A stretch of 64,000 nt of DNA from Hyphochytrium catenoides (lineage: Eukaryota > Protista > Hyphochytriomycota), in assembly GCA_900088475.1 (NCBI GenBank), contig FLMG01003792.1:1-64000 (forward strand), given 5' to 3'. Below are positions 8,586-64,000 of the stretch, in pieces (within the stretch, counting starts at the first letter, position 1; every line of letters begins with the position of its first letter). The translations under genes and the position numbers were made by a program. Under the pieces are notes generated by a model. The model was not told the DNA's origin. It was given only the letters and a program-made list of their open reading frames with translations, and did not search any database.

Positions 8586-10542
8586 CTATTGCTCTGCAGC
8601 TGCCCATCCCAAGCTCAGTAGAAGCATGTACCCGGATGTTACTATTTGGACCAGACTAAACTGTGCACCCTTCTCTCTAACTATGGCACCACTTTTACTG
8701 TCACTTGCGCCGACCTTTGACACATTGACCTCTAGAGTGTGCGCAAGGAACACTGCAGAATCCTTCTTCGTGATATCCTCGACAAAGTACCACTTCGCCA
8801 TAAGGTTTTGTGGAGTGACGATGAGCTGATAATAACCGTGGTGTTGCAGCTCGACCCAGCGCACTTGCTCTTCTGCCGCATTGATAGCCTCTTCAGCAGC
8901 ACTTAGGATAACTCCTTGGTTGATGGGTTGAGGTGCCGTAACGGATGGCGTCACGAGTTCAAGGCCGATATTCTCTTTCTTGGACTCATGTTCATACTGC
9001 ACATCATTGATCCAAGAGGTATGGATGTCGCCCGTTGCCCAAATGACATTCCTTGTAGCCAACAACAGGTTAGCCTTCATAATCTTCCTAAGGTCTCAAC
9101 ACGAAGAGTAACGTACTTGATATTCTGTTCCGCGATAAAGCCTTTTAATCGCTGTCTATTGGCTGGATAGCCGTTCCAAGAGTCCCTTAAGAGAGTCTTA
9201 TCGAAGTAGTCCAGTGTTTCAATAGTTAAAGCGGTGAACATAACCTGGATGGGATGACAAGTGATGAATATTGTCGCAAGGGCACATCATAGTAACACAA
9301 TCAACGCGTCTGCATGCATTTACCTGGTTTCCTAGCACCTTCCACTTCACGCCATTATTCTCTGCCTCTTGTAAGGTGTTGTTCAGCCAGAGTTCTTGTG
9401 AGTATCCCATTATGGTGCGATTCCAGCTTTCTGCAGAGGATTCCGTCAGTGAAGCGCCTCACTTTCAGACCTTGGCTCATCCTACCTATCACTTCGTTAG
9501 AGGTGACGTTTGCAGGGTCCCTTCCGTAGATTCTTGTGTCCAGCATCATCAATTCCTTTGATCAAGTCAATGAAGTCAGACAACATAACAGATAAAATAG
9601 CGGGGGAAGAGTCATCAAGGCCGTCTTTCCTACCATAAGACGCCCGAATCGGAAGCTTCTGAAGATCACGGTTTCGTTGTTTGGATCTTTCTGAGCTCTA
9701 ACAGGAGTATATTCTAAATATGCCGTGATTGCATCGTCTTTCCTGTCACGCCATGGACCTTCCTTGGATGGCTGGTTGTTTAATGCTCCAGTTTTCCAGG
9801 CATTGTTGGCGAACTCGTGATCATCCCACACCATAATCCAGGGGAACCATCTCATCGCCTCAGACAACGAAGTGGTGTTCCTATACTGAGCGTAACGGTT
9901 TCGATAGGCCGTGAGATTGTACGCTTCTGTCGGGGGATCTGGAGGCCTCCCAATAGGACTCCCATCACTGAAAGGTCCATCAGGACCGTATTCATAGATG
10001 AAGTCGCCCAAAAAGATGACCCCAAAGAGATCCGTTGATCCTCGGATGTGGTCCAACGCTGTAAAATATCCTTCCTGGTAGTTAATGCAGCTTGCAATGG
10101 CAAAGCTTATCGTCTCAAGATCTCTCTTGGAGTCCGGTAAGGTACGGGTCCTCCCAATTGGAGAACGCGTGGAGTTGTTATCATCGAAAAAGCGATAGTA
10201 GTAGGTCTTGGCAGGTTCCAGGCCTTCAACAACAAGCTTGATAGTCCAGTCTAAACTCGAGTTCGTTGTAGTGCTTCCATTCTTGACTGGATCCCACAGA
10301 GCCGTCGTCATATCGCTCGATAGGCCAACTTCCCAGCGTATTGTTGTTTCTTCCCCTTTTTCTTTCGATTGTTGGCTACTATTATCATCAACCTTTGACC
10401 ACAGGACGACTGAGGTTTCTTCTGGATCTCCTGACGCTACGCCCCAGTTAAACTCAATGGACTGCGCCATGCCTCCATATAGAGAGATCAAAGAAGCAGT
10501 AAACAGGGTCGTGATCGGAACGGCATTGAAGATCCGCCGCAT
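8586..10542 (-). CDS. phoD: PhoD-family alkaline phosphatase/phosphodiesterase, secreted; 5 exons: 10542-9634, 9555-9486, 9430-9324, 9244-9117, 9051-8586
   Basis: Motifs GVASGDP, FAIASC, FLGDFIYE, WDDHEFANN, MLDTR, WKVLGNQV, DSWNGY, TGDIHTSW, ELVTPSVT and HHGY. Has an N-terminal signal peptide and a hydrophobic C-terminal tail; introns splice in frame. Confidence 0.95.
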
Positions 10543-18654: not shown

Positions 18655-19920
18655 CTAGTTTCGGATACTTGGAGTTGCGTAAGTAAAGCCTTCATAGAAG
18701 AGCGGATGATGATCAAACTCTTCCTTTTCCTTAAGTGCTCTGGCGGAGCTTGGTCTTTGGCTGTCTTCTCCTCCCAGCGTCTCCGTCTCTTCTAGCGGCT
18801 TCTCTTTCAGAATTTCAGGAAAGTTCACTGAATTGGTACCCTCAACAAGAAGGCAGGATGATGGGTCGTCGGCGTGGTTCAAGTTCAAAGCTGCAGTGTA
18901 AGGCTTATACGCAGATGCCTGGGACGGCAGCCTCTCAAAGTCAATCCCGGCGAAGAACGGATGCTGCTTGATCTCTGAAGCCCCATTTCCACTGCCCAAG
19001 CGTGTCCGCGGATCCTTATCTAGGAGCTTGCGGATGAGGTCCCCTCCAACTTTATTGATGGACGGAGGGAGGACAAGCGGCGTGTTCACGATTTGGCGAA
19101 ATGTCTGGAGGTTGTTGCCGGCACACCAAGGAAGATAACCTGCGAGCAGCTCAAACAGTACAACCCCAAAACTCCACCAGTCGATTGCGGTTCCATAGCG
19201 GCTGCGCTGTAGGATCTCTGGTGCCATGTATTCTGGCGTCCCACATAGAGTCGTAGCACCATACAGGGGGTGTCTCACGCTCTCTTTGGCAAGATCAAAG
19301 TCGACAAGTCTTAGATGCCCATGGCCATCCAAGAGGATGTTCTCCGGCTTAAGGTCTCTGTACAGGATGCCAAGCCCATGAAGGTGCTCCAAAGCCAGCA
19401 AGAGCTCAGCCATGTAAAGTCGCGTTAGCCCTTGTGGGAGGCGCTTCAGCTTCTGAAGAAGGGCAAACAGCTCACCTCCCGGACAGTAATCGAGCACGAA
19501 GAAGAGGTGCTTCTCTGTCTGAAAGGCATAATGAAGGCTGACAATGAAGGGATGTTTAACCTTGGCCAAAACCCTTCTCTCCGTCCAGATTCGAGTTCTT
19601 TGCCTTCTGATGCCGGGGGGATCATTGGGCCTGGGAATCATCTTCATTCCATATAACGTCTGGTCCATCTTCCTCTTGATGAGGAACACCAGTGTTCCGC
19701 CTCTGCCCTTGCTAAGGATGCGAATCACCTCAACCTCATCTAAAACACTTGCACCAGCATTGACCTCTTCCGCAACTCGAGGAGGATTAGCACGAGGCCC
19801 ATGCTGGACCGACCTTGGACAACTATCATTTTCTGTCTTATGATACGCATGATGATGGCTGTGACTGCATCCAGGTAGAAAGCACAGAGCACTGCACTCA
19901 GGTGCAACGTGTCGAGCCAT
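18655..19920 (-). CDS. AGC-family Ser/Thr protein kinase (RSK/S6K/PKB-like), single exon, with DFD instead of DFG
   Basis: YGMK, TERRVL, HPFIVSLHYAFQT, DYCPGGELF, YRDLKPEN, VDFDLAKE, TLCGTPEYMAPE, DWWSFG and the C-terminal hydrophobic motif FYEGFTY. Confidence 0.93.
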   Translation of the reverse strand: MARHVAPECSALCFLPGCSHSHHHAYHKTENDSCPRSVQHGPRANPPRVAEEVNAGASVLDEVEVIRILSKGRGGTLVFLIKRKMDQTLYGMKMIPRPNDPPGIRRQRTRIWTERRVLAKVKHPFIVSLHYAFQTEKHLFFVLDYCPGGELFALLQKLKRLPQGLTRLYMAELLLALEHLHGLGILYRDLKPENILLDGHGHLRLVDFDLAKESVRHPLYGATTLCGTPEYMAPEILQRSRYGTAIDWWSFGVVLFELLAGYLPWCAGNNLQTFRQIVNTPLVLPPSINKVGGDLIRKLLDKDPRTRLGSGNGASEIKQHPFFAGIDFERLPSQASAYKPYTAALNLNHADDPSSCLLVEGTNSVNFPEILKEKPLEETETLGGEDSQRPSSARALKEKEEFDHHPLFYEGFTYATPSIRN

Positions 19921-22660: not shown

Positions 22661-23941
22661 ATGTCGCCACCTACTGATAAGCGCCGCCGGCCATTCCTCC
22701 TCTTTGGAGGAGTCTCCTCAGCGCTGTTGTCACTCTTCATCTCCACTTCGTCTTGGAATATAAGCCTAGCGCAGCAGTCGGCGCGGCACTATTCATGCCC
22801 CTTTCAAGACGTCGTGGCTTCGCCCCAATTCCAAATTGAACAGCTTCAGGGAGTTTGGTTTGAGATTGGCAACACCTTCATTGATAGAAGTCAACAAGAA
22901 GCTGCAGACCAGTGCACGTGTGGCTCATATCGGTTTACGCTGCCAGATGACCTTAGGGATGATGTCGACGGCGATGATACGCCTCCAGGCGGCCAGTGTG
23001 CCCCTTTGGAGCAGGACACCGACTATCCTGGGAATGATCTTGGAGAGACCCAACGAAATAACTCCACGCAATGCTGTCAGGACTGCCGCGACCTAGATGG
23101 CTGTCAAGGCTTTGTGTGGACGGACTGGAACGCAGGAACATGCTGGTTGAAGAGTTCTCTCCCTCAAGAAAGGCAAACCAGTCAGCGAGGAGTGATGGCG
23201 GGCCGCATCCCTGAGGCACAGAATGGCAACAACAGTCAAGAAGAAGGGGAAGAGACCAGGAGTTCTGTCCGTGTGGATTATGTCTGCACCGCTGAAAGCA
23301 CCATGGTTATTAGAACCGGCAATGCCTCACTCCCTCTCACGCGCAATAACGGTATTTTCGCTGTCGTTTGGCAGCAGTACCAGAACGAGAATGAGACAGC
23401 AGGAAACGACCCAAGTGCCAGTGACGGAAGCGAGAGGCAGGAGTGGCAAAGAATGTACCCTGGAGGAGGAAATATGCTCGTCCTTGCGTTGAAGCAAGGT
23501 ACGATAATATAGATGGAAAGTCGGATGGTGTACGATGCTTACTAAGATCGCTTCTTTTAATGTTGTCACTGATGATTCTAAACCGTAGGAGGTTCGGAGG
23601 ACGGGGGAGACAATGAAAGTGGAAGTGGCGGTTATCTTGTTCTTGGATCACCTTGTTACTTAGGTGCCCGCATCCTCTCGCGATCACCTGACCTCTCTTC
23701 CGACGAAATGAATGAAGCCGTCTCCGTCCTGCGTGACAGGAATTATCCGTTGGACATTCTAGACTTCAAAAGAGTTACAAGTATGGAAGCCAATTGCGAT
23801 TCTGTGCAGCAGGCCTGGGACAATCTTCTTCCTACCAGAGAAGGCGGTGGCCAACCCCAAAGTCAAGTCAGGGAGGAGGGAGAGACAAACGACGAGGGCA
23901 ATCGTGCCTTAAGGAGGATGAGTTTACTTGTTGGATTGTAA
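22661..23941 (+). CDS. Secreted lipocalin (ApoD/Blc-like) with an inserted PAN/apple domain; 2 exons: 22661-23498, 23589-23941
   Basis: Signal or anchor peptide; lipocalin SCR1 CP..FQIEQLQGVWFEI..C; PAN/apple DTDYPGNDL..CCQDC..GCQGFVW..GTCWLKS; after splicing, SCR3 ARILSRSPDL followed by a helix and a C-terminal Cys. Confidence 0.85.
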
Positions 23942-30528: not shown

Positions 30529-33049
30529 ATGAGTGACGGCAATGGAGCTTCAGGGGGCGGAGGTGGTGCGGAGAACCCCTTTGCGGAGCGAGCTCAAAAT
30601 TACTCTAACTCTTCGAGTGAGTTCTTCACTACTCTCATCGCCACCGGCGCAGTGGGATTAGTCCTACTCGCACTCTTCGTTTGTCTCAGGAACAGAGTAA
30701 GTTCGCAATATTGCAGTATCTATCGCGGGAGCAGCTAAATGACGACTGACCTCTCTCTATTCCTGGTGCTTGTTCTCCCTCCATCCTCTGTACTGTCTTC
30801 CATCAATAATTCTCATCCTGCCTGCACCTTTCTTCCATCTTCTCTTACAGCGGCCACACCTTTACATCCCCAAGCTGCTTCTCACAAAGGAGACTCTACC
30901 ACCGCCTCCTTCGTCCATATTCCGGTGGGCTCTTACCTTACCGCGTATACAGGATCAAGTTATCTACCAGCACGCAGGGCTAGACTCGCTCATTGTCCTT
31001 CGCTTCCATAGGTGAAAGAATACTCTTCTACTAGTTCTCCTCACCTCCTCACCTCTTCATTTCTACAAGATATTGTACCGTTGAGCATCCTTCATCTCCA
31101 CTGATTGCTTTTCCACCTGCAGCTGTGGTTATTAAATTTCTTTGCTGAAGGTTAAGTTTCAGACCGTCGTCGCCTTCATAACTTTTGGGGGGGCTAACGT
31201 CAGCTGTTTTGGCAAGATGCACCTCGTTATAGCTTGATCTAACTTCCGCTGAAGGTTGGTCGTGACCACTCTTGGCCTTTTCGCTATATATGGACTGGGT
31301 TGCCTCATTCCAATCTATGTCACCGGGGGCCAGGGCCAGAGTGGGATGAACAAGCTAACCGTTATGAACGTATCTGATTCTCAAGATGGACGGGTAAGCG
31401 ATTTCTCTGAGTCAAACCTAGCGATAATAAGGCAAAAGTGAAGAAGAAATGAGAGGCAGTTCCTACTCCTTTTGTTTGATTCCCTTGACGTTCACCTACT
31501 ACATCGAGTCACCATTGATACCCCTGCCCCTATCGTCATATAGAGACCCCTTAACTCCTGCAAGGTTGCTGTCTCACCCTTGTTCAGTCTTACCTAACCC
31601 GCCTTGTTGTACACTTCCCTTTCTCTTCCGTGTCTTTCCTCCTCTCTTCTGATCTCTGCGCCCGATCCCTGCAGTTATGGTCGACATTGGTTGGGGTCTA
31701 CCTCCTGACGTTCCTGGTCCTCTTCTTCCTATATCGAGAGTATAAGGTCTTTGCCTTCTACCGGGATCTGGATCTGAAGCGCATTGAACCTCGAAGCTAC
31801 ACCCTTCTTGTTATGGACATTCCCAGGGAAAAGAGGAACAGAGCGGAGGTGACCAGGCTTATGGAGAAACTCTTTCCAGGACATGTTCAGGCTGTGCATA
31901 TGGTGGTGCCCAAGGTAATAAGGCGGCTCTGCTCACCAGGAGGCCAGCACTCCGTTCCTTTCATCAGCACCATGCTCCGCTGGTGCGCGCGAATAATCCC
32001 TGCCATTGTCTGCTCAACCTCCTCTCCTGTCTGGCTACGTATGTCGTCAAGCGGTCTCCTCTATTCAACACGTCTTGTCTCTAGGCAAAGCGATTCTGAA
32101 CTACTATCGCGTCTCTCTTCTCCTTCCATTAAATGAACGCTCATGCCTATTTCCTAAAGGATGATCTCGCAAGGGCTGTTAAACAGCATGACGCCGCAGT
32201 CATTAGCTATCAGGCGGCAAGGCTAAAGGAAGATACAACCGGACAGAGGCCACAGCATCGCTTGCGCATGTGCGGCCGGAAGACTGACTCTATCTCCTAC
32301 TACGAGGAGGAGGTGGAGGACCTAGACACCCAAATTCGGGAGCTTCAAGATGATGTGCGCCTCCGAGTACGTCCGTCCACTTGCTTTCCGACGGTTGGCG
32401 GTCGTCGGCTAGCCCTTATCAAATTCCTTTCGTCTCTTCCGTCCTCACTTTCCTGGTTCATAGCGAAGACCTTCTTGGTCTTACTTATCAACCAGCGGTG
32501 CCCTTTTCCCTTCTTTGCTTCCCCCACTGATGCTCGTTTCGCTTGCTTCCTCTTCGTGCCGTCCAACTAAGTCTTCTTGCCGGACCTCTGTCCTCTTGCA
32601 GGAGCCCACACACTGCTGCTTTGTCACTCTGTCTCAGCGGAGCAAGGTCATAGTCGGAAGCCAAACTCGTCTTTTCAAAGACCCCTTCCACTATGAGATG
32701 TTCGAAGCACCGGATAACAAAGATGTCATATGGGAAAACCTAAAGATTGAGAAAAGACAGCGATCTGTTCGCTTTATAGCTGTCTCCGTCATCGTTGCTG
32801 TCCTGCTGTTCTTCTGGTACATTCCCGTGGTCTTCGTTAGCGGTCTGTTTAACATGGATAACTTGACATCAGCCTTCCCGTTCATGGAGTCAGTCCTCGA
32901 CTCCTCGTCCGTGGTCAGAGGTAAGGGAGAAGCTAAGACGAGGCCGTCCCTTAAGCCTATTGCTTTGCTACTCTGGGCACACCCTGCCACTTGCGGATAT
33001 TTTTTCTTCAAACTCACTTTCTCTCACATGCTCTGTCCCCCCCCCNNNN

Positions 33050-46880: not shown

Positions 46881-47364
46881 CACTGTTTGCTGCACTTTGG
46901 ATGCTTCTCCTTTCATGCTTCAGGTTGGCTCTCCACTGGCTTCTTGAACAGCACTTTCTGGCTCTATCTACCCTCTAAGGACATCCTTGACACCCCACAG
47001 CCCACACCAAGCAAGGTGATTGCCATCATGCAAGCGATAAAGTCAAAGAACGGTAGGAGATGCCACCCAGTGAGGTGCCATCATCGTCCAAGGATGTGCT
47101 TTGTGGGGTTGAGAGGAAGGGTGCAAAGAGGCCGAACTGAAGGATGGAGTGACGCCTGAACAGCAAAAGAGCATCCAGCTTGATGATGCGACCTCCTCAC
47201 TACATCTTTTTCCAGTGACATAGCAGGGACGCGTGGCGCATCAAACCTACAGCTGCCCGCGTATTCTTCCTCCTCCAACTAAGGCTATAGCCTCGCGCTA
47301 CTGAAGCAAACAACCCATACCGCGCAAATCTGAAGCCTTGCTACCATCTCTTCAATCCAGCACA

Positions 47365-48444
47365 ATGAAGGGCAACACCTCTGCTATAACCTTTCTGCTC
47401 GTCGCCGCATTGGCGCTGTTCGCAGCTACGGTCACTGGAAGGCCAACAGGAGCTCCAGCGTGCCACTTTAACCTTCAGGCAGTCACAAAGGGCCATGGTC
47501 CCCCCACAGACCTTCCTGAGGTAAAAATCTCACTCTCCGCGCAATTTTATGTTCCGGGCAAAGCGCTGAAGATCTCTGTCACCGGTCCCACCGGGTGGAA
47601 AGGGCTCTTGATGTATGCTAGCGCTCAGGGAGGAGCCCCAGCTGCTGGGGCGCCAACTGCTGGGGCACCAGGTGCCGGCGCTAACCCACCCACCACGGGC
47701 CCTGCCATCCCTGGCGGTAGTGCACCCACCACAGGCGCTGCCGCCCCTGGCGCCGCCGGTCTACGCCACCTCCAGCTCGATCCAGGAGCGCCAGGGACCC
47801 CACCTCCTACAGCCGGTGGAGCACCAAGTGCACCTGCAACTGGCGGCGTTGCGACGCCTGGAGGCACCAAGAATCATGTGGGCAAGTTTATCAACCTTCC
47901 TGGCGGCTTCAAGCCACAGACTCAGCAGGCGTGTACCACTGGACAGGTCACTAACGAAGGCCTAGACGCTCTCAGCGGAGCTTCCACCATTACGCACTCC
48001 GACCCAACAGCCAAACAGGACACTACATCGTTCATCTGGCTGGCTCCTACAAAGTCTGTTGGTCCTATCACATTTTCTGCTGTGGTTAACATGGGTGCTG
48101 GGCCTGTTAGCAAGTGGATGCTGGTTGACGTCGTGGTCAAGCCTGGCAAACTAGTGAGTGGACCATCTACTGGAAGTTCTGCAGGTGGAAATGGTACGAT
48201 TGCGGTCACCCCTCCAACTCCTACTGCAGCCACTGATTCGTCATCATCGAGCACACCTACCACTGGTGACAGCAATCTCCCCCCAACTGACGACTCTGCT
48301 CCAACGGACGGAACTTCGGGTGATGCCACTGGCGGAGATGCCACTGCAACGGCTGATGGTCTTGCAGCATCAGGTGCCGACTCCAACAGGGGCAGCTGGC
48401 TCTTGCCAGTGTTCGTTGCAATGCTTGGCGTTAGCTTGAGCAAA
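47365..48444 (+). CDS. Reeler-domain cell-surface protein with signal peptide, S/T/D stalk and GPI-type tail (stop codon hidden in N gap 48445-48504)
   Basis: RPTGAPAC...H, YVPG..ISVTG..WKGLLMYA, HVGKF, C..TITHS..K...FIWLAP...GPITFSAVV are Reeler motifs. C-terminus SWLLPVFVAMLGVSLS. Confidence 0.85.
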
Positions 48445-49029
48445 NNNNNNNNNNNNNNNNNNNNNNNNNNNNNNNNNNNNNNNNNNNNNNNNNNNNNNNN
48501 NNNNCGGCGAAGATCGCTGAAAGTGGCATCGAGCTCTGCTGCTCATTCCAAAGATTAAATAAATCTCAACAATATGAATCCCATCATCTCAGTACACCGA
48601 CTCTTCTTTGGTTTATCCGCTTCCTTTGCACTTATTGCCCCAACTTTGGGCTATCACCCTCGATGTCATCTTCCGCTCTTCGTATTTAAGCAGAGTTGTC
48701 CTCCTAGTTGACATGTCCTCGTTTATCATGTCTGTTAATTCTAAAGCGGCAAGGTGGGGCAGAGCTGTGTTAAAGGTGACTAGCTTGTACTTGAATTTGA
48801 TTCTTGACTGCTGCTGATCAGAAGATCCTCACCCACGGTCGCTACTGCTAATGCCACTTAGCAACGAAAAGATGAGTGCAGAAGATCGAATCAATGAAAA
48901 GTGCGATTGAGTTAGGGAACTTTGTTTTCCCTACAGATACATATGTTCTCTCATCATCAACTGCACTGCTCTGTCGTTTTGAAGAGAAGCTTGACACTTA
49001 GCAACAGATCACCCTTCACGACCTCTAAC

Positions 49030-52000
49030 TTACTGACGGAGTCTCGCAGAGGTGTCTCCGCCGGAGAGAAGGCGTGCCATCTGATCACGATAACTTATGT
49101 CTGCATCCCCGTTCATATAGCTTAAACCCGCAGCCTGTAGGGTCTGGCAGTAGTCGGGCTTCTCGATGACGTTGAGATCTACTAGGCTCCGGCATATGGA
49201 ACTAATCCACATTGCCTTGATCGGCGTTGGCCTGAGAAGTCTCACTTCCACCTTGATCACTGACCTTGACCTCCCATTGTCCGCTAGGTTTGGCAAGCAC
49301 AACCCTTCAACCTTATTCAACAGAACGACCACGTGCTCCTCATTGAAACCAAATATCTGAGTGAGATGCAGGAGCACAGCATCATGCAGGAAGTGGAGCT
49401 GATCCCGGCTGGTCCACCATGAGTCGGAGTTATGAGCAAAAGCGAAGGCAAACTTCGTCGCGATGAATCTGGCGGGAACACTTCTTGTCTGCATCAGGCG
49501 TTTCTGGCGGATTGTATCTCCTGGTATGCACCGCGTTGCTAGCTTACTCATGGGCTGGGACCTGTATAAATAGTCATCCGGCGATTAAAGACACTTAGAA
49601 GATAACGAAACCGACATTGGAAAGACCGAGAAAATTATGACTATGGACAGACAGAAACCTTACCGGGTATAAATGAGTCGAACCACGCTGACCACTGAGC
49701 CGGAAGCTTGGTTTCCAGAGGTTTGTTGACCAGAGTCAATTCCTGGCTGCTGCGACGTCTTCCACTTGATAGGAAGAAGTTCAGACAGTCCCGGCTTGGG
49801 GCTTGAAGTGCTGCTGCTATTCATAGTACCAAGAAGGGGTGCTCTACTAGAGATAGTAGAGGGTCGTGGCTCCCACAGGAAACTAGATAAAGAATCTTCA
49901 CTATCCATCGATAGTGACTCGAGCACAAAGTCTTCCGCTACCTTGGAAGGGGCTGGCGGTAGAGGACTATGAAGAAGGTGGACAAGAAGAGTGACAGAAC
50001 TTCCACGTGTCAGATTCAGAGGCTCCGGCGTCTGGAATACCAACTCTTGGTCTCTCATAGGCAACAGACAGGAGAGGGTGAAGTTGACCCTTGCAAGGCC
50101 TTCAACGTAGATAGTTCCTGTAGCCTTGACGCAAGCGCCTCCCTCCGGTCCCCATGCAGCTGGAATGCTGACTCCTTTGAGGGTAAGGTCACGCTGAGCA
50201 CGTAACGAATAAGCGACACGACGATAGCTCCAGCTTTGAGTCAAAGAAAACGGCGTGCGGTGGTTAAATAGAGACATGGCTGACCATAAGCCATCTACAC
50301 TTTGATGTTCCCTGTTCACAAAGCAGAGACAACGTGAGCCAGTAACACAAGGATTCCATGTCGGAGGCAATTACGCTCACCTTTCAATCATCAGACTAAG
50401 TGCAGGATAGCTGCTGACTGGCTGACCAGAATCGGGGCCAAGATTCGCGGGCAAGGAGTCAAATCTTCCTTGGACGTTTAAGAAACGGGCTCCAGAAATA
50501 ATCATCTCAGGTTGCCCTTGGGTAAGGCTGGTCGTTGCGCAAAGGACATTAGAAGTTGCTGTGATGAGCGAGTACCGTCGACCAGGAACTAGGTCCCTGG
50601 ATACTCCAGGGAAGCCACAAAGTCTTCCATCTACTTTTCTAGATGGGGACAGCTGTGAGACCCTGGCCATGGTTAGAAGTATTCCGTCCTCAAAAAGGCC
50701 AACGTTGGGCTCTACTGCGTAAGGAGGGACCCAGGGAATTGCCGAGAGTCTCGTTGGTGAAAGGTATTCTTGCTGGATGCAGATACCACTAAGCTTTGCA
50801 GGTACGAAGAGATTAAAGTCTAAGGTCACATAGCCCTCGTTGCTTGAGACAGCGCAGGATGTTCCAGCAGGCAATGGGTTTGGTAGGCCCGAGTATGCTG
50901 TTCGAGGTGCTTCACTCAACATAGGGGCCTCTGGCCTCCTACGATTTAGCAGTTAAGGTGGCCATAAGTATGATGTCTTGATCAAGTAACATGAAGTGGT
51001 AAAGAGACAGCACAAAGGGCAAAACTAACCTTGTAAGGATGGGTGTCAGTGGACTTCCAGACTCTAGGTTGAGAGATGTGCCTAAAATGTCATCCTTGAA
51101 GCTTTGGGGACCAGAGAAGGTCCCAAAGGCATTGATAAAGGTGGAGTTAACTGAAGCCACTGATGCGGTAAAGCACCTATTGGATAGAACAATATAGATT
51201 GGACCTGCTTGAAGTAAGATGGGCTCCGCGAAGTATTCGGCTGCACCCTCAAGAACCTGGCTTCTATTTGAAAGCGTTAGGCTTCCTAATGTTGGGAAGA
51301 AAGTCTTATTAAAAAATCGGAGCAGGGCCAGACTGGTTGATGTCCAGTCTTCTCCAATGCGGTAAGGAGGGGCTCCAATACCCAGACCTGTCACTAATGC
51401 TTCTTGCTTGACTGTAAATGCAGTAGCGGTCCAAGCTGCGCTGCATGTAGAAGTGTTAGTTGGCGAAGGTAGCCACGAAGAGAGGAAGCCAAAGGCCCGA
51501 GGTGTGGGCTGTGGTGGCTCTAATGCGACAATATCAAATAATGGTGCAGTGATGGGGCCGCAGGATTGAGTGGCCGAATAACCGCTGACCCCTGGTGTGT
51601 TAGAGAATGTGGACGTGTTGACGGCATCGCCTGTCTGGTTACTCTCAAAAATTCTCTGGCAGGAGAACGAAGCCCACCGCAATTTCATCTGAGAGGCGGT
51701 AGGACCTGTCGCCGTCTCCCGATTCTCTACGAGTTCGAGGTACCGCATGGGCAAGACTGCAGTTAAGGAGTAGTGACTTCCGCCATTTAGTTGTGCAGAT
51801 CCACTTAGGCCGCTAAAGCGATAAGAATTTACGCGCTGGGAATCGGATGAGACATTGCTCTGGGCTAGGACTTTGCCTGTCATGGTCTCGTAGAGTCGAA
51901 GGGCTACTGATGCATCTCCCAAGCCTTCGCACAACAGGGGGCTTGCAACATCGAGAATTCCTAACCCTGTTACCGTAATGTTTGCGACTGGGACGAAGTC

Positions 52001-55000
52001 CATGCGAATCTCAGTGCTCTCTCGCACACACCGCGCCGCCGCGACCTTTGTTGGAGGTACGATATTGCCAATGATGGACTGCATCGCACTGTCACCACCA
52101 TACGGAGCAGCAATGAATGGCGTTAGTAAGATGGCTGGAGAATCATCCAGACCTCTTCGACTTACCTCTTGGGCACGAAAGAGAATACCATGGATGGCGT
52201 GCCACCGTCATTTACGCGCTTTGTTGGATCAAGCAGCTCAGCTGTGAGGTTGAAATGTGCTCGTTCTTCTGGTGTCTGTGGCAGGTTTACATAGCTATAG
52301 GAGTTCATGGTGTAGGGAGCTGAAGGACTTGCGCTAATGCCAAACGGAAGAGAGATATTAGGTAAAATAGCCCGCAAGTGGTATTGAAGTCCTCGAGTCA
52401 ACAGCTTCCTTTCGATAGGCTCCAAGAAGACCGATCTTGCGCTGTCAGCCGTAGCTGAGTATCTGCTTACGTCCGATCGAGCCAACAGCTTCGAACCCTG
52501 GAGCAGCTCCACCCTGATGCTAGAAAGATTCGTACCTGTGGGCATCATCATAATACAGAAGGCTAAGCAACGAGGTATGGTCACCTTATTCCTTGGAGTC
52601 TACTAGTATCAAAACCTACCACTTGTATTGAAAAAATACGTGGGCACACCGAGGCCGGTTAAGGTTATGTCAGAAGTCGGGGTGAATTGCATCGCTCTCG
52701 CCACAAAAACCATAGAAGCGTTCGACATCGGCAAGCCCCATCCTTGTGTGTGAGTGGTCTCTAGGAGATACTGCACGGAAAGATTGCCAAGGGGACGCTC
52801 CCTTGGGTATCTAAGATTGAAAAAGCAAAACGAGATGAGTATGGGCCCACGACTCATCGCCATCACGTTTCTTTCTCCATACCGGGTATAGATCGCCGAC
52901 ACAGGCGAGCAAGCTTGATAAGGCAATGCATTGTCCCACGATTGAGTCCAGAAGTCCCGTGGAAGACTGGTTGCCATTGAAGAAACGGCCATTCCGTACT
53001 CACGCTCATTGTTTGGTTCGATGGCTAATGGATGGAATTCTCCTAACACCGGGTCATACCTGTCTGAGCCCGCACAACTCAGTAGCACGGGCTCGTGCAT
53101 AAGAGCAGCCATGAAGTACATTTGTCCACGTCTCAGTAGAAGAGGCGACTCAAAGGAGGTTACCAGTCGGTTTCGAGTGACGTCTGACCAGTCCCCTAGG
53201 TAGACCGAAGCCAGCCGGGATCCGCTGATATAGGGTGCTGAGACCGAATAGGCCTCATAGATTCCAACGTGGTACGTCGGAGTTTGTGCCTCCATAGTAA
53301 ACGGTAGAGCCACGGCTGCACCAGTGAGTAGAACATCCTGTAGCGGCGTGAACTGGTACCCTACAATCAGGCTCCTCTCTTCATGTAACTTAGGACCACT
53401 GAATGGTACTATTGATGCAGGAGCAAGATACCCTTTAGGTTGATAATCGGGGCCGATGGCCTTGGATTTCCTGATGGTGATAGATGCGGAATGAAGTAGG
53501 AATCAGACATAAGTTATGGCGAGAAAAAATAAAAGTCGAGCTTATTATCTCTCAATAAGGTACGTACCGTGCAAACAAGAAGGTCAGTGGGACTTTGGGT
53601 GACTCAAGCACACTGCCAAGAGTAGTGGTGTTGTTATCTACACTTGAAGTCAACATTGTCACCATAGTATGTGTATAGTGTGTCACGGTGAGCTCGAAGG
53701 GCAGCACACCAGAAAGAGTGTAACGCAACCCAGGTTTAAGAGAGATTGACTGCCCCAAAGCACCATAGGCCATGTAGGAATTGGCTCCTTCATAGTCGAA
53801 TGAGAGTGAATCTGACATAGAAGGCGGAGGCTCTATCGACAACGAGAAGGAGGTCAGTAACTTCCCGGATCCTTGCTCGCTCAACTGGAGGGCGACGTTC
53901 GTCATGGCGGATTGAGTTAAGTTAGACCAACACCCTCCCGAGGGACTTGGAAGCACCGACCCAAAACTGGTGACCATTAGCTCTTGCTGCACAGTGAAGG
54001 TGAACGAATAGCTGGTCTGACGCTGATTACATAGGTGCACACTGGCAAATTTGAGGGCCGCCTCGCCAACCGGACCAGGTGCATGTCTGATAGGAGCGGA
54101 AAGGGAATCACTTCACGAGGAGACTCGATCCTGCACCGTGACATCTTAGCTTACCTTCGGAATTTTATAGTTAGGACTGGCACCTCTACTTCATCCCGCA
54201 AACCCGGACCGGGGCAGAAGCCACTCCTAGCTGTCCTATTACCAGCATACTGCAGGACGAGTTGTGGATCTAAACTAGCGGGAAGAGAGCTTGTGCCCTG
54301 ATAATATGCTATCGTGAATGCCGTGGTTTGACCACGGAATTGGGGTGACCTCTCGACATGGCGAGGCCCAGAACGGAGATATTTTCCCGGAACAGTAGCG
54401 GCCAGATAGTACGTCGTACCAGCGTGAAGAGTAAAGGTTCCTGGAAGATGGTAGTACGCATAGTCGTCGCCTTCGTGAAGAAAGGCAGCGAGTACGGACA
54501 GTCTGAAGCGGGTAGACCCTCGAAGTACCAAATTCTCATCGTAGATCCCCAGCTCCAGCCTTCCCATGTCTACGCTCGGGCTCCCCAGTTGGTGGAAGGC
54601 GTCCTCAAGAGCTTCACGCAGCAGGCCTACAGCTAACATGGATGTTGATATCTCTGGTTTGACCTGAAGCAGGGCAAGAGTATGGACTGTCTGGAGATCC
54701 TTTCGCACGACGGGGAAGAAGCCCTTTTGATCAAGGAAAAGAGGTGTTCCGACCCCCGAATAGAAAGAGTTGGACCTAGGAGAAAAGCCAGAGAAACGTA
54801 AGGGTTATTGTAAGGGTCGGCAGCGCAACTCGTCATGCCTGCTTCTAACCTGGTATACATGAAGCCAGCGCCATTCCAGAGGCCAGATATGGCCCAGGGT
54901 GCATTTCTCACAGCCGAGGTACAATTGAAGGATGTCCGCATGTCACATACAACGTCAAAGCGTATGGACTCCTCGGAGAACATTGACCATACTTGCGTTT

Positions 55001-58000
55001 GTGACATCTGTATAGTCAAAGACAGAGATGTCCGCAGAGCATACCTGCGCCCTCGGCGCAGTCGCACCGGTGGCCTCACTGACATATACCTAAAACCTCT
55101 AATCAGTTTTCCTCTTCTTGAACTAAATAACCCCTCAGCGACCACTTGATTTTGGTCATCCACCATCACTACAGCTTGAGTATCTCTAGTGTGGTTGGTA
55201 CATCCTAGGCAATTCTCCTGATTTAGATCTACCAGGCCCAGCGACGTTATAAGGATGTCTTCGTAAGGGTAAAAGTCAGTCGACATCAGCGGTCCAGCTA
55301 AGCTGTCCACCCTAATTACACTTGTATTCTGCATTGCTACTGCTTCAGTATCAAAGTCTTCATCTCTGTCGGAGGAAGACCTGACCAAGGAAAGAGCCAG
55401 TCAGAAGAATTAACGCCAAGCAACACAATTGAGCACTAGGTATCGTTTCAGACTTACCCGCCTCCGAAGGAGAGTTGTGGCACATAAGGCAGCAAGCACT
55501 GCGCGTTCCAGGTCAAAGAGGAGGTGACTGAACAAGAGGGGACAGAACATGTCCTCGACTCTCGGCGGAAGGCACTAATATTCATGCCGCGCACTCCCTC
55601 AGCTCTAACCGCGGCGTCCACCAGTTCCCAGTGTAGAGGTTTTGGGAGACCGCCTAGTTCTAGACCGCTACACCCTTCAAGGACTGAGGGGTAGCAACCA
55701 GATAGACCAAGTCGGTAATCGATCACCTTCACGTAATTGTTGCAGCCACTTGCCACATTCTGTGTAGCCAAGGTCATTGGAAGCTCAGCGGTCAGAGTAT
55801 ACGTGTATCCGGATTCCAAAAACAAGCTCCTGTTCAGGCTGAGATAATGACTGTAGGGGAACAGTGTGACGTTGACTAAGAGAGAGGGCGGTGATCCGCT
55901 CTTATAGATTGAGATTGGAATGGCAGCGGAAATGAAGTCCTGCTGCAACTTCATCGTCCTGTCTGGAGTAGGGAGAGTGTAGGAGTTGATGAACCCTTCC
56001 CGCTTAAAGTACAATCCCTGCACCTCTATTGTTCCCTTTGGTACGATAAAATCATAGCCCACTTTGCTGGTATCTACGGAAAGCAGAACCACAGACGCTG
56101 ACGCTGGAGGTGGAGCTGTTGGAGGTGGAGCCGTTGGAGGTGGGGCCCCACTGGGTGGTGGAGAAGGTTTTGACTGGGTATCATTACTGGGTGCCTCGCT
56201 GCCATAATGATTTCATAGAGGTTTTGGGCTTTATTAGCTCCTTGGCATGGGGAAATTAAAAGAAAAGCCTTTCACAAACCTGGTAGGAAGATACGTGAAT
56301 GTCATCAAAGCAGCAGGGTCCAAGGTCCAGGTCGAGTTCTCCCTTGTGTACCACATCGCGGTGCTGGAGTAAGGGTCATTCGCATACAGCCAGTGGCTAA
56401 TCCGGTGGCCGATCGTGATGTTCGGGTTGACCAGGAAAGACGCAGCCTGACGACTAGAGACATTGAAGACTGGGAGATTAGCAATTAGGAGGTATGAAGT
56501 ATTTGCCAGCAGTTGCGGCGCGGGGGGATAGTAAGCCGGTCCGCTAAAGCCACTAGTCCCGGGATAAGTGTTGAACGAGTTGTAGGCGTTTGTCTCAGCC
56601 CTTCGAAATCTGCCTCCAGCCGCCTCTACTATCGGATCAACTACCTCAACCACAGCGCGCGCAACTTCATAACCATATAAAGCATTATAGATGGCAATAG
56701 TCACGGGCCCATCCCAGCCTGAGGTTAATCCGGACGAACAATTATTCCATTGTGGCTCAACCACACCCAGCCCAGTGAGGGTCATATTCAAGCTTGGCCT
56801 GAACTCGTATCCCAACAAGACTCTACCCGGCTCTAGAGGTGCTCCGCTGATGGGTTTATTTCCTATGCTGGAGCTGGAAGGGCAAGAGTCCAGTAGCAAT
56901 TGGCCCATACGTCCAGCTGGAGTTCCCGATGGTTCTCCTGAGGGCCTGCAGAAGGGCAAGGGGACTTTACTTTGAACTACAGATCTTTGATGTATCGTAT
57001 TGAAAGATGACAGGTTTACCTCACGATAACCATGCTAACCGCAGAGAGATTTTCTCTAGCTAGCAATAGTTCGGCATCCCCTTTTATTGGCCACCAAGAG
57101 GGAATTTCAGCACTGTCAAGGCTTGAAGTCGTGTTAACTCTCGGCAGGGAGAAGAGAGTAGCATTGCCGACCCCCACAAGACTTGCTAAGGTTGACGTAT
57201 TTATCTCTCCTGCCGGTCCCAAGACCCCTCCATTGGAGATGTTTGCGAAAGTTGTTTGCCTGCGTCTCACAAAGGGAAGCAGAGCTAGAACGCCATAACG
57301 GCCTCCCGCTGGGAGAACCATCCCTGAGGGGAGGCCTCCCACATGCTGCATTTCCATGATCGCTGACCATCCACCTACCACGATGGATGCGAGAAGAGTC
57401 ATGTTGCCACTATCCGTAAGGTTATAGACTCCAATTTTCCCATAGAGCTCACGAGCATTTGCTAAATAGGTTCCATTTCCAACGCAAATGTCACCTGAAG
57501 CTCTGTATAGTCCGAAACCCTTAAGGAAAACAGTGCTTTCGGTTGAAAAAGTGAAGCCAGAATAGACACCGGAGTGGACCTTGATGTGGCAGATATCAGG
57601 ATTCCATCCAGTAGGGTTAGAAAGTGGGAATACGCTGCCGCTGCTCACCATTTTCGTGGTCGGTACCCTACAATAAGCCACAAGATTTGCGAAGTTAGTA
57701 GGACTTACAGCGGATGCAGACGAGGACGGAAAGGGCGCTAAGCTAAGCTCGGTACCTGTAGTAGAGGAAGTCTAGGAGACCCTTTATAGATTCATTTCTG
57801 CAAAATGATGCGAGACACGGCTGAAGGTTGAGGTTATACAATGTGTAGGGTAGACCATAATTGGCAGGTCCAGAGGACCCTAAGTCCTCGTAGCTATTTC
57901 GTGATGGGAAAGAGAAGAAAGACGACTCAATCTGTATAACGTCATCAGGACTCATCGTTGATGGAGGTTGCCCATTGCCATTTGATCTTGATGTGTTCAC

Positions 58001-61000
58001 GAAGTACGGAAGTCTGCCTACAATTGTATACCGCTCCCCTTTTCGCAGAATCATAGAGTTCTCAAATCTTAGGGAAGAGTAAATCGTCCCGCCCAACTCC
58101 TGCAGTCTGCGGCCGCTCCCCGGCCCCACGCGAGCGGAGTTTAGAAGATAGCCACGAGCATCGTAAATGCCCAATATACTTGACCATCGGGCACTGTAGA
58201 CCAGCTCTTCCGATTCCGTAGCGTCATACAGTCCCCTATCATTACCATTTATCACGTTGGTGATATTCTCTTCGTCACAAACCCCAGTCCATGCTACGGG
58301 GCTAGCAACGCCCATTGCGGCAATGTAAATATCAGCACGAACTGTGAAGGAGAAACCCGTTTCGACTGACTCCGCAACTCCACAGGAATCAAACGTTGGC
58401 AAAGGCTGGAATGGTTTGGCAAATGAGTACTCATAGCCCCTGTTGAAGGTGCGAATGAGAGGCAGGAGAGCGTTACGTTGATAGTTCAGTCGGGGATTGA
58501 TAAAAACAAGGCCACCGCTTTACACCTAGACCTATGCGTGATTGGATACACTTACCTCGCATATAAAATGTCAACGATTGGTAGCCAGGAGCCTTCCGAG
58601 TGCCAATAGTCAGATCCCGTTCCTGAAACTATCTGAGTAGCCGGCACTGGTGGGAGAGTCCAGGGGAGATCGTCCCCAGGAAGAAATCCCGTGGCTGGAG
58701 TGCGGAACTTGGAGAGTACGGTTAATCTCTCGTTCCAATTGGAACTTGCACTTCCTACAATTTCATAAGAGACCAGGGCAGTGACCGCATATCTTCTTCC
58801 CGGGTAGAGCGTAGTGGGTCCTTGGTCAAGGATACTGTAAGCAGCTCCCTCTGACATGTACTCCGGTCTAGCTGATGAAGCTGATCTATGAAAAATTTTG
58901 GTGGAACCAAGAAGGAGCCCTGAAGTCATATCATAAATGCCGACGGGTACCGCACTCTCCAACGGTAAAGCTCTCTCGCTACCATATACTGTTACTGGAC
59001 TCAGGACTCCTACAGCCGTAATCACCGTGGGCACGCGGACCGCTACTTCAAGGCCAACGAAGGAGCTGATAATAGGGTCTACTGTTCCATATACTGGGCT
59101 GCCTGAATAGTAGCTGATCAACGACTCACCCTCAACCGAACCAGTTGCTGGCCTGTATATAATACGAAGCGGTAGAAATGAGGAAAAAACTATGGGCGTC
59201 AGAGCGTGACAGAGATGCTGTGTCACTCCAATACTGGTACTTACCGCGTGTACAGGAAAGAGCTTGGGATGCTGATGCCTGCACTACCAAGTCCTTCTGA
59301 ACTGTTTCCACTTAAGAATTCACCCTGCCCTTCAGTGTTATTCCCAACATTTACCGATCTCGTAGCCCAGCCGTGAAGAAGGCGGCCTAATCTGAACCCC
59401 GCTCCCAAGAACGCAGGTGCCATTCTTATAGGAGCCGCAGAAAATGTGTCATACGGAGCCTCCACAACGATGGCATATTCAGTGTCTGGCCTCATTTGTA
59501 CCGGCGGCAGTACAGCCTCGTATAGGTAGCTGTCCTGATAGTGACTACCTGCTGTCACGGAGACAGAATGGACCATGATATTCCGCTGAACCTCCCATAC
59601 CGAGACTACAACTTGAGGGCTTAGCGAGTGTGGTGGAAAGAAATATTCTGAGGCTCCAAGAGCAGTCAGAAGAATACTTCTAGTTGGCCAGAACGTGATT
59701 CCGCTCGTATTCAACAAGGGTAAGTTCGAAGGTTCTTGACCAGCAATTATCACTGCATTTTCCCCCGCCACTGCAGTGCGCAACCTACGCGGAGGACGTC
59801 GGCAAACTAAGAAAGCACCAACGCACAATCAACTGTTGTTGTGTTTCACACGTACCTGTCAACAAACAACCTCGGCCTGTGGGAATAGTAAAGAGCACTT
59901 TCCGATCCGTCGATAGTAGTGTTAACGGTGTCATGAAGAGGTGGCTGACATGTTCCATTGACGCTCATGTCCATGCAAACGCCAGTTAGGCTCATGTTGA
60001 TGTGCGCCACCAGACGGGTCCACCACCACTCCAGATTGCCTTCGCCGCTCAACGGCTGGTAATACTCGGACTTAGCCAATGGCCAGGGCAAGGCTTCGCC
60101 AGAAATGTTCGGCGATGTGGTAGCGAGACCACCCAAATCCACACCAAACCTGTATCCGGACACTATGACGCTCTCTAGATTGGGGTTGGACGTACTTTCA
60201 GCCGTTAGGAGGACCATGGGCAACCGGACAAGCACACTATAACTCTTCCCTGGCGTAAGCACAATCGGAGGCTCTACTCTTGCGTGAGACTTGTAAGGCG
60301 CCAAAGTGATATTTGCAAGTGATGCTCCCGTCATCGTCTCGTAAAGCCAGAGAGTCAGAGGGCTGGACTGGAAGGTAGACTGCAGTAATGAAAGGTCAAC
60401 AGAAGTGTTTGAGTCTGGACTTGCACCATAATGAGAGATCACGTGACTGATTGTCCTGTTGAATTCAAGACCAAAGAGCTTCCAAGGACCGGATCCCCAT
60501 ACGGTGAAGTCGTAACCAGCAACATTTGGAACCGACGCAGCATAGAAAACTGGCTGTTGGATGACGGGTCTGGGTAGATCAGGAAAAGGTGTTGGTATGC
60601 CGCCTGTCGTCCCATTTGTACTTGATTGGTTGTCAACCTGCTGCCATTGGCTGTGAAGTAGATTATTAGAGCATTCACGCAGTATATTGCTTCTAAAAAC
60701 TACTAAAACGTTACCTTGGTAGCGGTGGAAGGTACGAGAAGCTTAGCAGCCGAGCGGGATCCAAACAGAAGTCATTCACGCTGTAGCTGGCGTTGACGTC
60801 CTGCGGATGCCAGACATAGCGGGACGCGTAGAAGGAGTCATAGCCTACGCTAAAGGGCCCACTCGATAACCGAGACCCGACGGTGATATTACTTCCAACA
60901 AATAGGTTGGAGGACTCATATGCGCAGCTACCGGGATAGAAGGCAGTCGCTGGGACGTTTGCCACTAAAGAGTAAATTCTGTTTGGCTGCAGGACCACTC

Positions 61001-64000
61001 CACTGCCACTCATAGTGTTGTTAACGTTGTACGGCCAGGAAAGAGTAGAGGGCATGATCGGATGAAATCTAGCTCCAGATACATCGCTAAGACGGGGGCT
61101 AAAGGTCTCAATATCAAAATCTAGAATACGTCCTGCATACTTGTCAAAGAGACCGACCCGAATGGGCTCGCCCCAGCCCCTCGCGCCATTGAGAGTAGCC
61201 TCTGACGTGGCATTATCCCCACATGTCCAGAGAGGCTCCGCTATTCCAAGGCCTGTTACATTTAATGATGTGGAGAGAGTGAATTCGTAGCCGATGATGA
61301 CTCTGCCAGACGCGTTTCTGGTGTCGGGATTGCAGGAGTGCAACACGACGTCTGGTAGGAGCACCGCAAGCTGCCCTGGTGGCGCAGTGTACACCCTGAT
61401 AGGCGTGGAAGGATAGGAATAACGAAAGGCGTCCAGTAAGAGGTTTATGCCTGCGCTTTCAATTTCATTGCTTACCTTGAGAATAATATTGATACACTAG
61501 GTAGTAGTGGTCCTGGCGTGGTGCTTGGCGTGGACCATAGCCAGGGCGGAAGAGAATGGCCCCACTTCATGAAGTTTTCAGGAGCGATATAATCGTTGTG
61601 GGACCATCCTGAGAAGAGGAGCGAGCCAGAATTCCACCATGAGCCCCATGAAGAATAAGATGCTCCTTGATAGCTCGAGTTCGGTCGCGATATATTCGAA
61701 TACGCGCGGGCAAAAGGCAGAACTGCAGCCACTCCGTAACTTCCTCCCTCTGGTAGTAGAATAGGGGTTTCAAGGCCCCCAGCTTGCTGCATGCCATTTA
61801 TGTCCGAAGACCATGGACCGATCATCATGCTCGCAATCAGGTACGGACTCGTTGGATCAGTGAGGTTGTATAGCCCTAAGTTAGTAAGCACGTTCCTGGT
61901 GTTCAATGTAGTATGGTTTCCAAGGCGACAAACTTCGTTGTAAGGCGGCAGCGCCACACCAAAGCCTTTTATGAAGACCGCCGCCGATGTCGAGAAAGTA
62001 AAGGCCGAGTATGAACCGTTCTGGGCTCTGATGTGACAGATGTCGCTGCTGCTGCGATAAAGGCTCGGCAGGAGTTCGCTAGAGTAAACTCGGGAACTGG
62101 GTTGTATTCTGCCGCAGGACAAAGACAAAGAGTCTGTGAGTGCGATCGATAGGAACTTTTACGGGTGGTTTACCAACAAACTGAAGAGATACCTTATGAG
62201 CATCATATTCAGCAAGCCGCGTGCTGCGCTAGTGGTACAGTTTCCAGGACTGTCAGAGCAGGACATAGTAGTATGGTTGATGTTTAGGTATTCCAAGCGG
62301 TCAGGAAGTCTGTGTTCGCCTCTTATGAGATCGGAACCGTCGGAGACTCTTTGTTCAAAAGCTCTTCCGATGGTAAGGACAGGCAGCCCTCCGGAAGCAT
62401 CGTCAGACAGTTCAACGGCCGCGGTTGCAAGTCTCGTTAACCTGAAGGGTAGGACTCCGACGAGGGTATACTTTTGCCCTTTTAGGAGAGTAAGAGAAGA
62501 CGGGATGGACGATGATGTCGAAGCACGAAGAACAGTTATACTACCGAAATAGGACACGCTACTACTCATGCTGGCCTGGGCCGCGGACGGATCATGTTCG
62601 TAAGCAAGATCGGTCGGGCCAACCACCGCGGACGCCAGCAAAGTTCCACCGTCGTCATAAAGACCCATTATGCTTGACCACTTGACGTTCCATAGAAGAC
62701 CTTCCTTGTCATCGATGCATGGATTGCTAATAATCTCGTCTTTGGTTGGAATGTGAGTTCCCATCTCAGTAAGTGCAAAGTCAGCAGTAGGGACAAAAGA
62801 AAACCCAGTCAATGTCTCTTCCGGAACGTAACAGGCATTAGCCATCTTTGGGCTGAAGTAGGGCCTGGCAAGTGTGTCCACGGCAACTTCAAAGCTGGAA
62901 GTGCTACAAGAATAGAAAGAGGATGTGAGTAGTGAAGTGACCCCACATCTACGTTTCGGGGTTACGTGATCATGATTGTTCCAAGCGCTCTCTAATTTGC
63001 GTACCTGGAAAACAAGAAGTCCACCAGTGGAACCGTTCGTGACATGGAGGGATCATCGTAGTTGTATAGACTACTCGATGCTAGGACTGGAGCAGTCTGG
63101 GGTAAGGCATGCCCAGGTCCGAACCCTGATGGTGCCGCTCCGTAGAGCCTTGATACAACTATAAGTCTTTCGTTATAGTTGGAGTAGACGTAGCCCTCGA
63201 CCACATAGGAGACAAGTGCCAAGATAGCATAGCGTCTTCCCGGAAGCAACGTTATTGGTCCATCCTCTATGACGTTGTAGACTGCTGCACCAGAGGACTG
63301 GCTTGGACTGGCAGAGCCAGAAGATCGATGAAAAACGTTCGTTGAGCCCAGGAGGCTACCGGCGGTTAGGTCATAGACGGCCACGGGTACAGCAGACTCC
63401 AAGGGTCCGGATCCTTCTCCGTAGGTGGTCCACGGACTAACTATTCCCAACGCAGTCACCGACGTCATGACTTGCGGAGAGACCTCGATGCCCGTGAAGA
63501 AGCATGCAGCTTGTTGAAGCTGAGGGTGGAGGCCGCCTGGTCCGCTAGAGTAGGTGCTATACCAGAGGGGAGATTTTCCGCTAAGTGTTCCAGCAGCCGA
63601 CCTGTCAAACCCAAAAGAGAATTGTCAGTGCAAGAGATTGCCCAACCACCTACCAAAATAACTCATAATGGAATAGATTCTACCTCGTATATAGAACAGA
63701 CATAGTTGGAGCCTCGACTGGTGTTGCCCAAATGTAGCCCTGATCCCATGCTGGAAATGGGCTAGCAATGGGTCCCAAATAATCAAAGCTGGACTCCATT
63801 CCCCACCCTCCTGACATAAACTTTGGTACATTCGTGTATGACGTGTTCATGATAACCGCATACTCCGCGCCGGCCATGAGCTGAATGGCGGGCAAGACAG
63901 CTGCATACCGGAATCGGTCAATGGCAGCATTGGCGAAGTTAACCGTCACATTGGCAAGCAGAATGCCACCTTGTTGTTGAGCATAGAGTGAGACCGTGGC
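49030..64000 (-). CDS. Giant modular protein, 5' end outside the window; 22 exons in window: >64000-63684, 63601-63005, 62903-62193, 62108-61476, 61395-60715, 60650-59856, 59784-59245, 59152-58556, 58439-57756, 57667-57020, 56945-56280, 56198-55458, 55380-54850, 54775-54155, 54086-53568, 53470-52883, 52810-52620, 52562-52166, 52088-51030, 50938-50381, 50311-49664, 49561-49030; about 21 DUF4082-like modules plus a distinct C-terminal domain
   Basis: Hand splicing at GT-AG sites gives an uninterrupted frame of about 13.25 kb (about 4,400 aa). Each module has G(F/Y)xF...(L/I)TGLG(V/I)...(V/I)G(I/L)YD...G.LL...L..G..Y.(L/V), and most end in Y-x-R or a similar Arg at the intron. Many N-x-S/T sites. 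Confidence 0.88.

Follow-up and report, generated by a model that had tools for sequence, protein, structure and literature searches.

Titin, in its A-band, and nebulin are giant beads-on-a-string proteins in which same-position domains of successive units are more alike than neighbouring domains are; their arrays expanded as blocks of several exons were duplicated in tandem, most exons encode a single domain each, and the intron phases are symmetric (PMC7754682, PMC9529554, PMC10862085). Divergence of neighbouring homologous domains has been presented as a general rule, linked to a pressure against misfolding between adjacent homologues (PMC4660218). Here we describe an array of this kind in the protist Hyphochytrium catenoides. 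The window analysed is a stretch of 64,000 nucleotides (nt), positions 1-64000 of the 78.5-kb contig FLMG01003792.1 (assembly GCA_900088475.1), and the rest of the contig was included since the feature crosses the window edge. The feature is a higher-order repeat of exons that would belong to one very large minus-strand gene, running from contig position 74836 down to ~49664 (~25 kb, roughly 7,400 codons). This gene is part of our favoured explanation, an ancient super-repeat of divergent DUF4082-type modules in a single protein, to which as a whole we assign a probability of about 0.8. The feature itself is real, well defined, and ancient, and its architecture is of a kind already known, with modules drawn from a domain family about which little is known.

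A likeness to titin had been proposed in an earlier interpretation made without database searches (here, the sequence-only reading), and it holds for both the architecture and the growth mode, a block-wise super-repeat of one-module exons. The differences from titin and nebulin lie in the module, a predicted DUF4082/PHR-like sandwich of ~200 amino acids (aa) and not an Ig/FN3 domain or a nebulin repeat, in the period of six, and in the product, which in the protist is probably secreted and N-glycosylated and not sarcomeric.

Organization of the super-repeat

With letters for module types and numbers for copies, the order from 5' to 3' is leader, G5 F5, A4 B4 C4 D4 G4 F4, A3 B3 C3 D3 E3 F3, A2 B2 C2 D2 E2 F2, A1 B1 C1 D1 E1 F1, and a degenerate tail. 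The sequence-only reading had paired the six exons A2 to F2 with A1 to F1 as one duplicated block and proposed a check for further units beyond 64 kb. These units are present, with the pattern running past the window edge up to 74.5 kb, and what was described as a duplication is a true multi-copy array, with four clean copies plus a partial and a degenerate one.

The details of the proposed pairing were confirmed. All the quoted motifs are found in minus-strand open reading frames (ORFs), and the exon ends given for the 12 exons are the 3' ends of our splice model (the lower coordinates of A2 to F1 in Table 1). The offsets, stated as 4398-4456 bp, are 4439, 4449, 4437, 4456, 4435, and 4398 bp for A to F, and the two B exons are of exactly the same length. 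When all stop-to-stop minus-strand ORFs were compared by blastp, the six exon pairs were reciprocal best matches inside the window, with 26-48% identity and E values of 1.5e-9, 2.8e-18, 4.8e-31, 3.7e-13, and 3.3e-42, plus 9e-6 for the remaining pair, one exon of which is truncated at the window edge; this value improves to 1.7e-10 with the complete exon. On the whole contig, nearly all strong blastp matches fall at 1, 2, 3, or 4 times ~4.4 kb. The same period appears in the mean Smith-Waterman scores, which are 242, 179, and 166 at lags of 6, 12, and 18 modules and 40-54 at all other lags (shuffled control, 34 +/- 6). Thus the hallmark of titin and nebulin arrays, equal positions closer than neighbours over at least three units, is found here in the lags of 6, 12, and 18, in the type clades described below, and in the four clean units.

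Exon structure and reading frame

The guanine-cytosine content is near 50%, which, together with introns of ~84 nt, marks a small eukaryotic genome and speaks against a human source. All searches and folds were run exon by exon, and the exon translations were pooled for residue counts. The gene would encode a signal-peptide exon and ~35 modules of 175-265 aa each, mostly one module per exon. All 27 modelled introns are GT..AG and phase 2, with lengths of 55-192 nt (median, 84), and 19 of them interrupt an Arg codon that follows an [LF][YF]x motif. At the end of each module ORF, just past this motif, the GT donor overlaps a stop codon, and a pyrimidine-rich YAG precedes each next exon. The 5'-most exon starts with the ATG at 74836, continues with a hydrophobic leader, and is joined by a phase-2 splice to the first module, G5 (acceptor at contig position 74528). 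With phase-2 introns on both sides of each exon, the reading frame survives the duplication or loss of any exon block, and this symmetry explains the in-frame copying of six-exon blocks.

Age and selection

A search for repeats at the DNA level gave only chance-like matches of at most 32 nt. Copies of the same type have 39-55% nucleotide identity, and their proportion of synonymous differences (pS) reaches or exceeds saturation at 0.69-0.85, compared with 0.33-0.54 for nonsynonymous differences (pN). The sequence-only reading had considered the duplication old, and these values agree with it; saturated synonymous sites, together with the lack of a DNA-level repeat, indicate that the duplications are ancient and constrained. 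The ratio of nonsynonymous to synonymous substitution rates (dN/dS), proposed there as a check on the paired exons, is not computable because pS is saturated for nearly all pairs, so that only pN < pS can be stated.

Amino acid identity averages 33% (24-51%) within a type and 19% (maximum, 29%) between types. Several traits are specific to a type: none of the four B copies has an N-x-S/T sequon or more than one Cys (0-1 each), and every copy of C and D has 4 and 2 Cys, respectively. The types have kept their own motifs, Cys counts, and glycosylation patterns despite saturation, which suggests that each position is under its own purifying selection. Altogether, the modules contain 115 N-x-S/T sequons versus 52 +/- 6.6 in shuffles, and this excess and the leader point to the secretory pathway.

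Module tree and duplication history

A tree of the 26 clean modules was built with IQ-TREE (the G5 row held ~16 intron-derived residues at its N terminus). The seven types form single groups, with clade supports of 97/96 for A, 100/98 for B, 93/92 for C, 96/97 for D, 99/99 for E, and 100/98 for G; F is separated from G with only 71/48, while F and G jointly reach 100/99. The type labels need 6 changes on the tree, the minimum, a value matched by none of 200 shuffles. The sequence-only reading would have been refuted, in its own terms, by a module tree in which the paired exons are not closest relatives, and no such tree was obtained, since each type forms a group of its own. When copies from the whole contig are considered, however, some exons have their closest relative beyond the window edge, as with E1, which pairs with E3.

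Sister pairs were found for A3A4, B3B4, D3D4, F4F5, and G4G5, from which the last traceable event appears to have copied the block G-F-A-B-C-D. D1 and D2 are also sisters, but E1 pairs with E3. The tree joins G to F, and by BLAST G matches F and never E, so we can assume that an F-like module replaced E at its position in both 5' units.

We propose that an ancestral module would have first diversified into types A to F and that the six-exon block of ~4.4 kb would then have been amplified in tandem by unequal recombination, with G deriving from an F-like module that came to occupy the E slot and the block G-F-A-B-C-D being copied most recently. The outcome would be the present series G F / ABCDGF / three copies of ABCDEF / a degenerate ABCD(E)F / about three more modules.

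Module identity and predicted fold

At E <= 1, a Pfam search with 20 exon translations gave only faint subthreshold matches to LAMININ_IV_B and the adenovirus fibre head, and PHR (PF08005) had no match. In the ESM Atlas, the top match was a DUF4082 cluster (score, 0.94; 189 shared features), with a PHR cluster at 0.91. An alignment of 25 modules was then used as a profile against 1.84 billion protein representatives and retrieved 453 proteins at E <= 1e-3. Among the ten top matches, which were looked up, five were named, all of them proteins from bacterial metagenome-assembled genomes (Arenicella, Wenzhouxiangellaceae, and Verrucomicrobiota), one annotated as DUF4082.

The independent link to DUF4082 (PF13313) is the Pfam match borne by the retrieved proteins themselves. 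PF13313 was present at E <= 0.01 in 45 of the 48 profile matches scanned; when proteins were scanned singly, 16 of 18 matched it at that level, 12 of them above the cutoff and over the same residues as the module profile. The co-occurring domains in those proteins are PKD, He_PIG, dockerin, CHB_HEX_C, F5/8-C, and CBM, and among single-domain matches, 27 of 30 carry PF13313 and 11 of 30 PEP-CTERM. A six-frame search of the whole genome with PF13313 gave no match, a blank that is weak because the 14 control genomes were silent too.

From this strong profile-level homology, we can place the module in the DUF4082 superfamily, as a divergent member with additional sequence at its C-terminal end. 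Protist modules and DUF4082 relatives have in common a core motif series (G-x-x-F, [VI]TALG, VG[IL]YD, LLAS, and L-x-x-G-x-x-Y), on which the consensus sequences of the module alignment and of the alignment of bacterial relatives agree with the columns aligned by hhalign. DUF4082 is found mostly in bacterial secreted and surface proteins, and some bacterial relatives also form tandem arrays, in which proteins of 4,398-5,332 aa are matched in as many as 8 places. In contrast to these relatives, the protist modules are eukaryotic, lie one per exon, fall into six or seven types in fixed order, go unmatched by the Pfam model even at E <= 1, and have an added C-terminal part of ~50-90 aa ending in [LF][YF]xR. 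Many bacterial single-domain relatives among proteins P0022-P0116 are ~210 aa long and combine a signal peptide with one DUF4082 domain and a PEP-CTERM anchor. VTALG, VGLxD, LLAS, and L-AG-TY are found in them as in the protist modules, and most of them have A-type modules as their best BLAST match.

The AlphaFold2 model of B1, made with an alignment of its paralogues, is all beta, with a predicted local distance difference test (pLDDT) score of 79 and a predicted template-modelling (pTM) score of 0.81. Its top Foldseek match is 3no8 (E 5.9e-4), and its best structural matches by VIA-align include the PHR domains (BTBD1/2 and MYCBP2) 3no8 (Z 10.3), 3gbw (Z 9.6), and 3hwj (Z 8.7) and the lectin-like domain of Cwp84, 4ci7 (Z 7.9), with 131-137 aligned residues and 5-16% sequence identity. 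The predicted fold of the module is therefore a PHR-like/lectin-like beta-sandwich, as far as the model goes. The module profile found no match among PDB sequences at E <= 10. Pfam Lectin_like co-matches some bacterial relatives of the modules. PHR proteins differ from the protist protein in that they are cytoplasmic ubiquitin-ligase components: the BTB-BACK-PHR or MYCBP2-type context is absent here, where we found a leader exon, an excess of sequons, and no other domains.

Other structural matches of the B1 model are a capsid-associated chain of cyanophage A4 (9jwb_Z; Z 9.7) and a capsid chain of PBCV-1 (8h2i_bG; Z 8.3), and tail or baseplate chains of a mycobacteriophage and of phi812 are also among the best. 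From these matches, the DUF4082/PHR-like sandwich seems to recur in virus surface proteins.

The degenerate 3' tail

The region from 55.4 to 49.7 kb was segmented by the C-terminal motif and typed with type-specific hidden Markov models (HMMs). The best types are, in order, A, B (weak), C, D, an A/E tie at a near-blank E position, and F, followed by an untyped, a B-like, and another untyped module. The resulting order A-B-C-D-(E)-F indicates that the period spans the whole gene and decays toward its 3' end. The rule of one module per exon is broken twice in the tail, where one exon (T6a and T6b) holds two modules with no intron between and the module at the E position is split by an extra intron.

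Beyond the last module, the gene may end at the TAA codon following T8 or be spliced on to a nonmodule exon at 49034-49561 (-). This 175-aa open frame lies directly 3' of the last module and is without module features or a Pfam match; an additional phase-2 splice could make it a C-terminal domain of the protein, or it could be a small gene of its own with an internal ATG as start.

Table 1. Exons and modules of the giant gene, in contig coordinates (all on the minus strand)
Feature	Position	Length or extent	Observations
A2	63684..64000 (-)	cut by window edge; full exon 63684-64214 of contig	type A clade 97/96
B2	63005..63601 (-)	597 nt	45% identity to B1, E 3e-42
C2	62193..62903 (-)		donor placed at 62193 after motif ..MMLI(R)
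D2	61476..62108 (-)		sister of D1, 97/94
E2	60715..61395 (-)		blastp pairing, splice model, tree
F2	59856..60650 (-)		blastp pairing, splice model, tree
A1	59245..59784 (-)		blastp pairing, splice model, tree
B1	58556..59152 (-)	597 nt	module used for folding and searches
C1	57756..58439 (-)		blastp pairing, splice model, tree
D1	57020..57667 (-)		blastp pairing, splice model, tree
E1	56280..56945 (-)		blastp pairing, splice model, tree
F1	55458..56198 (-)		longest branch of module tree
T1, tail, A-like	54850..55380 (-)		first module of degenerate copy; best type HMM A, 19.8 bits
T2, tail, B position	54155..54804 (-)		B best but weak, 5.4 bits; acceptor not fixed
T3, tail, C/D-like, C position	53568..54086 (-)		C 23.4 bits, D 21.2 bits
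T4a, tail, D-like, D position	52883..53470 (-)		D 23.7 bits
Tail module, E position	52166..52881 (-)	extra intron at ~52519-52616	type signal very weak
T6a (F-like) and T6b	51030..52088 (-)	one long exon	T6a: F 18.4 bits, A 17.0 bits
T7, tail, B-like	50381-50938 (-)		B 10.8 bits
T8, tail, untyped	49664-50311 (-)		last module before TAA at 49661-49663

Relatives and flanking sequence

The module profile was also run against the genome of H. catenoides itself, where, with at most 30 candidates scored, all 29 matches fall inside the giant gene. No close orthologue was found in protein libraries. Orthologous exons seem to be represented by two short fragments from other assemblies: P0020, which has 41-45% identity to F4 and appears to read through the intron after ..LTLTR, and P0032, which has 33% identity to C1. 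A word search with B1, limited to candidates of 109-346 aa, gave no match, and a search of JGI metagenome contigs with the B-type alignment gave 93 pattern matches, none of which was confirmed.

Upstream of the leader exon, the sequence is of low complexity and noncoding in appearance, followed by another gene. On this side, at contig ~76990-77430 (-), two close stretches encode a near-identical peptide ending in ..RRHHQALYFI[FL]VATAAFP amid poly-K/E/R low-complexity sequence; the pair resembles a local, short duplication of intergenic sequence. Close to the giant gene on its 3' side, a long ORF at 47338-48444 (+), adjoined by a run of N at 48445-48504, has a weak match to the Reeler domain (E 2e-4, 22.3 bits for a cutoff of 21). 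Elsewhere in the window, an ORF at 22661-23512 (+) contains a PAN/apple domain (PAN_4, E 3.8e-8), and a complete protein kinase domain at 18655-19920 (-) (E 6e-63) and a PhoD-like phosphatase at 9562-10542 (-) (E 6e-45) look like ordinary neighbour genes.

Alternative explanations

The alternative that survives best is that the period of six is a mere footprint of block duplication and that the modules are generic folded spacers with no unit-level function. A generic spacer would not keep seven clades whose stems measure 0.6-1.3 changes per site, F-type and C-type fragments occur in other organisms, and the type-specific motifs, Cys counts, and sequon patterns have outlasted synonymous saturation, so that we consider this explanation somewhat unlikely, even though an F-like G fills the E slot in two copies, the 3' copy is degenerate and includes a module that gained an extra intron, and one fold and one core motif are common to all modules.

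The region could also be read as several small genes lying side by side or as pseudo-exons in decay. With a stop overlapping the GT donor at the end of each exon, a naive reading does give separate ORFs, and the single-gene model is itself a product of sequence analysis; this possibility is very improbable when set against the lack of ATG in most exons and the confinement of the start codon and hydrophobic leader to the 5'-most one, the phase-2 GT..AG introns with pyrimidine-rich acceptors at all junctions, and ~7,400 codons without an in-frame stop and with pN well below pS. An assembly artefact, or a recent repeat homogenized by gene conversion, has practically no chance of being true, as it is already refuted by the divergence between copies and their saturated synonymous sites and by the absence of any direct DNA repeat of >32 nt, and no run of N lies inside the array, although the assembly is fragmented (4759 contigs, 61 Mb) and such runs occur at 33046, 38872, and 48445.

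Several points weigh against our preferred reading of the locus as one secreted protein with an ancient DUF4082-type super-repeat. Exon borders, the signal peptide, and the 3' end were deduced from the sequence only. PF13313 (cutoff, 28.4 bits) had no match to any of the 20 exon translations at E <= 1, and the hhalign comparison between the 25-module alignment and an alignment of bacterial relatives (98.9% probability, E 1.3e-17) is not independent, because those relatives were retrieved with the module profile. Tail modules T2, T4b/T5, and T8 have almost no type signal, and the six-module unit is not strict, with E replaced by G in two copies and a degenerate tail. Branching within types is only partly resolved, and the E1-E3 pairing misfits a simple 1-2/3-4 history. 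Lastly, ligand binding and location are points that we infer.

Possible function and significance

The sequence-only reading also took protein-level conservation as a sign of a functional six-domain unit. The part of this claim that stands is the persistence of type-specific features; the unit is, on the other hand, not invariant, as its E slot holds the F-like G in two copies. Because of this replacement and of the decay of the tail, a functional six-module unit is plausible but unproven.

The product of the gene would be an extracellular, heavily N-glycosylated, beads-on-a-string protein, and its modules may bind a ligand, most likely a glycan. A glycan-binding role at the surface or in a matrix is suggested by the fold class, the domain partners of the bacterial relatives, the leader, and the sequon excess. 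The super-repeat would keep neighbouring modules below ~30% identity and so limit inter-domain misfolding, in line with the pressure on adjacent homologues noted above (PMC4660218), and its period may also correspond to that of a partner. A bolder proposal, unlikely enough to be called speculative, is that of a eukaryotic extracellular ruler or scaffold with six functionally distinct DUF4082/PHR-like lectin modules per unit, whose length would match a periodic polysaccharide lattice of wall, scale, or matrix. It would be an independent, non-metazoan, and non-Ig version of the titin/nebulin principle, in which a mostly bacterial domain may have been gained in a single event, with later amplification through the copying of exon blocks.

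The locus provides a clean and fully traceable case of higher-order repeat growth outside animals, in which phase-2 one-module exons, a fixed order of six types, the replacement of E by G in its slot, and a decaying terminal copy are all visible at once. For the uncharacterized DUF4082 family, it adds a predicted fold class (PHR-like/lectin-like) and a eukaryotic branch that the present Pfam model misses. It also offers a system for asking whether super-repeats serve the dissimilarity of neighbours or the matching of a periodic partner.

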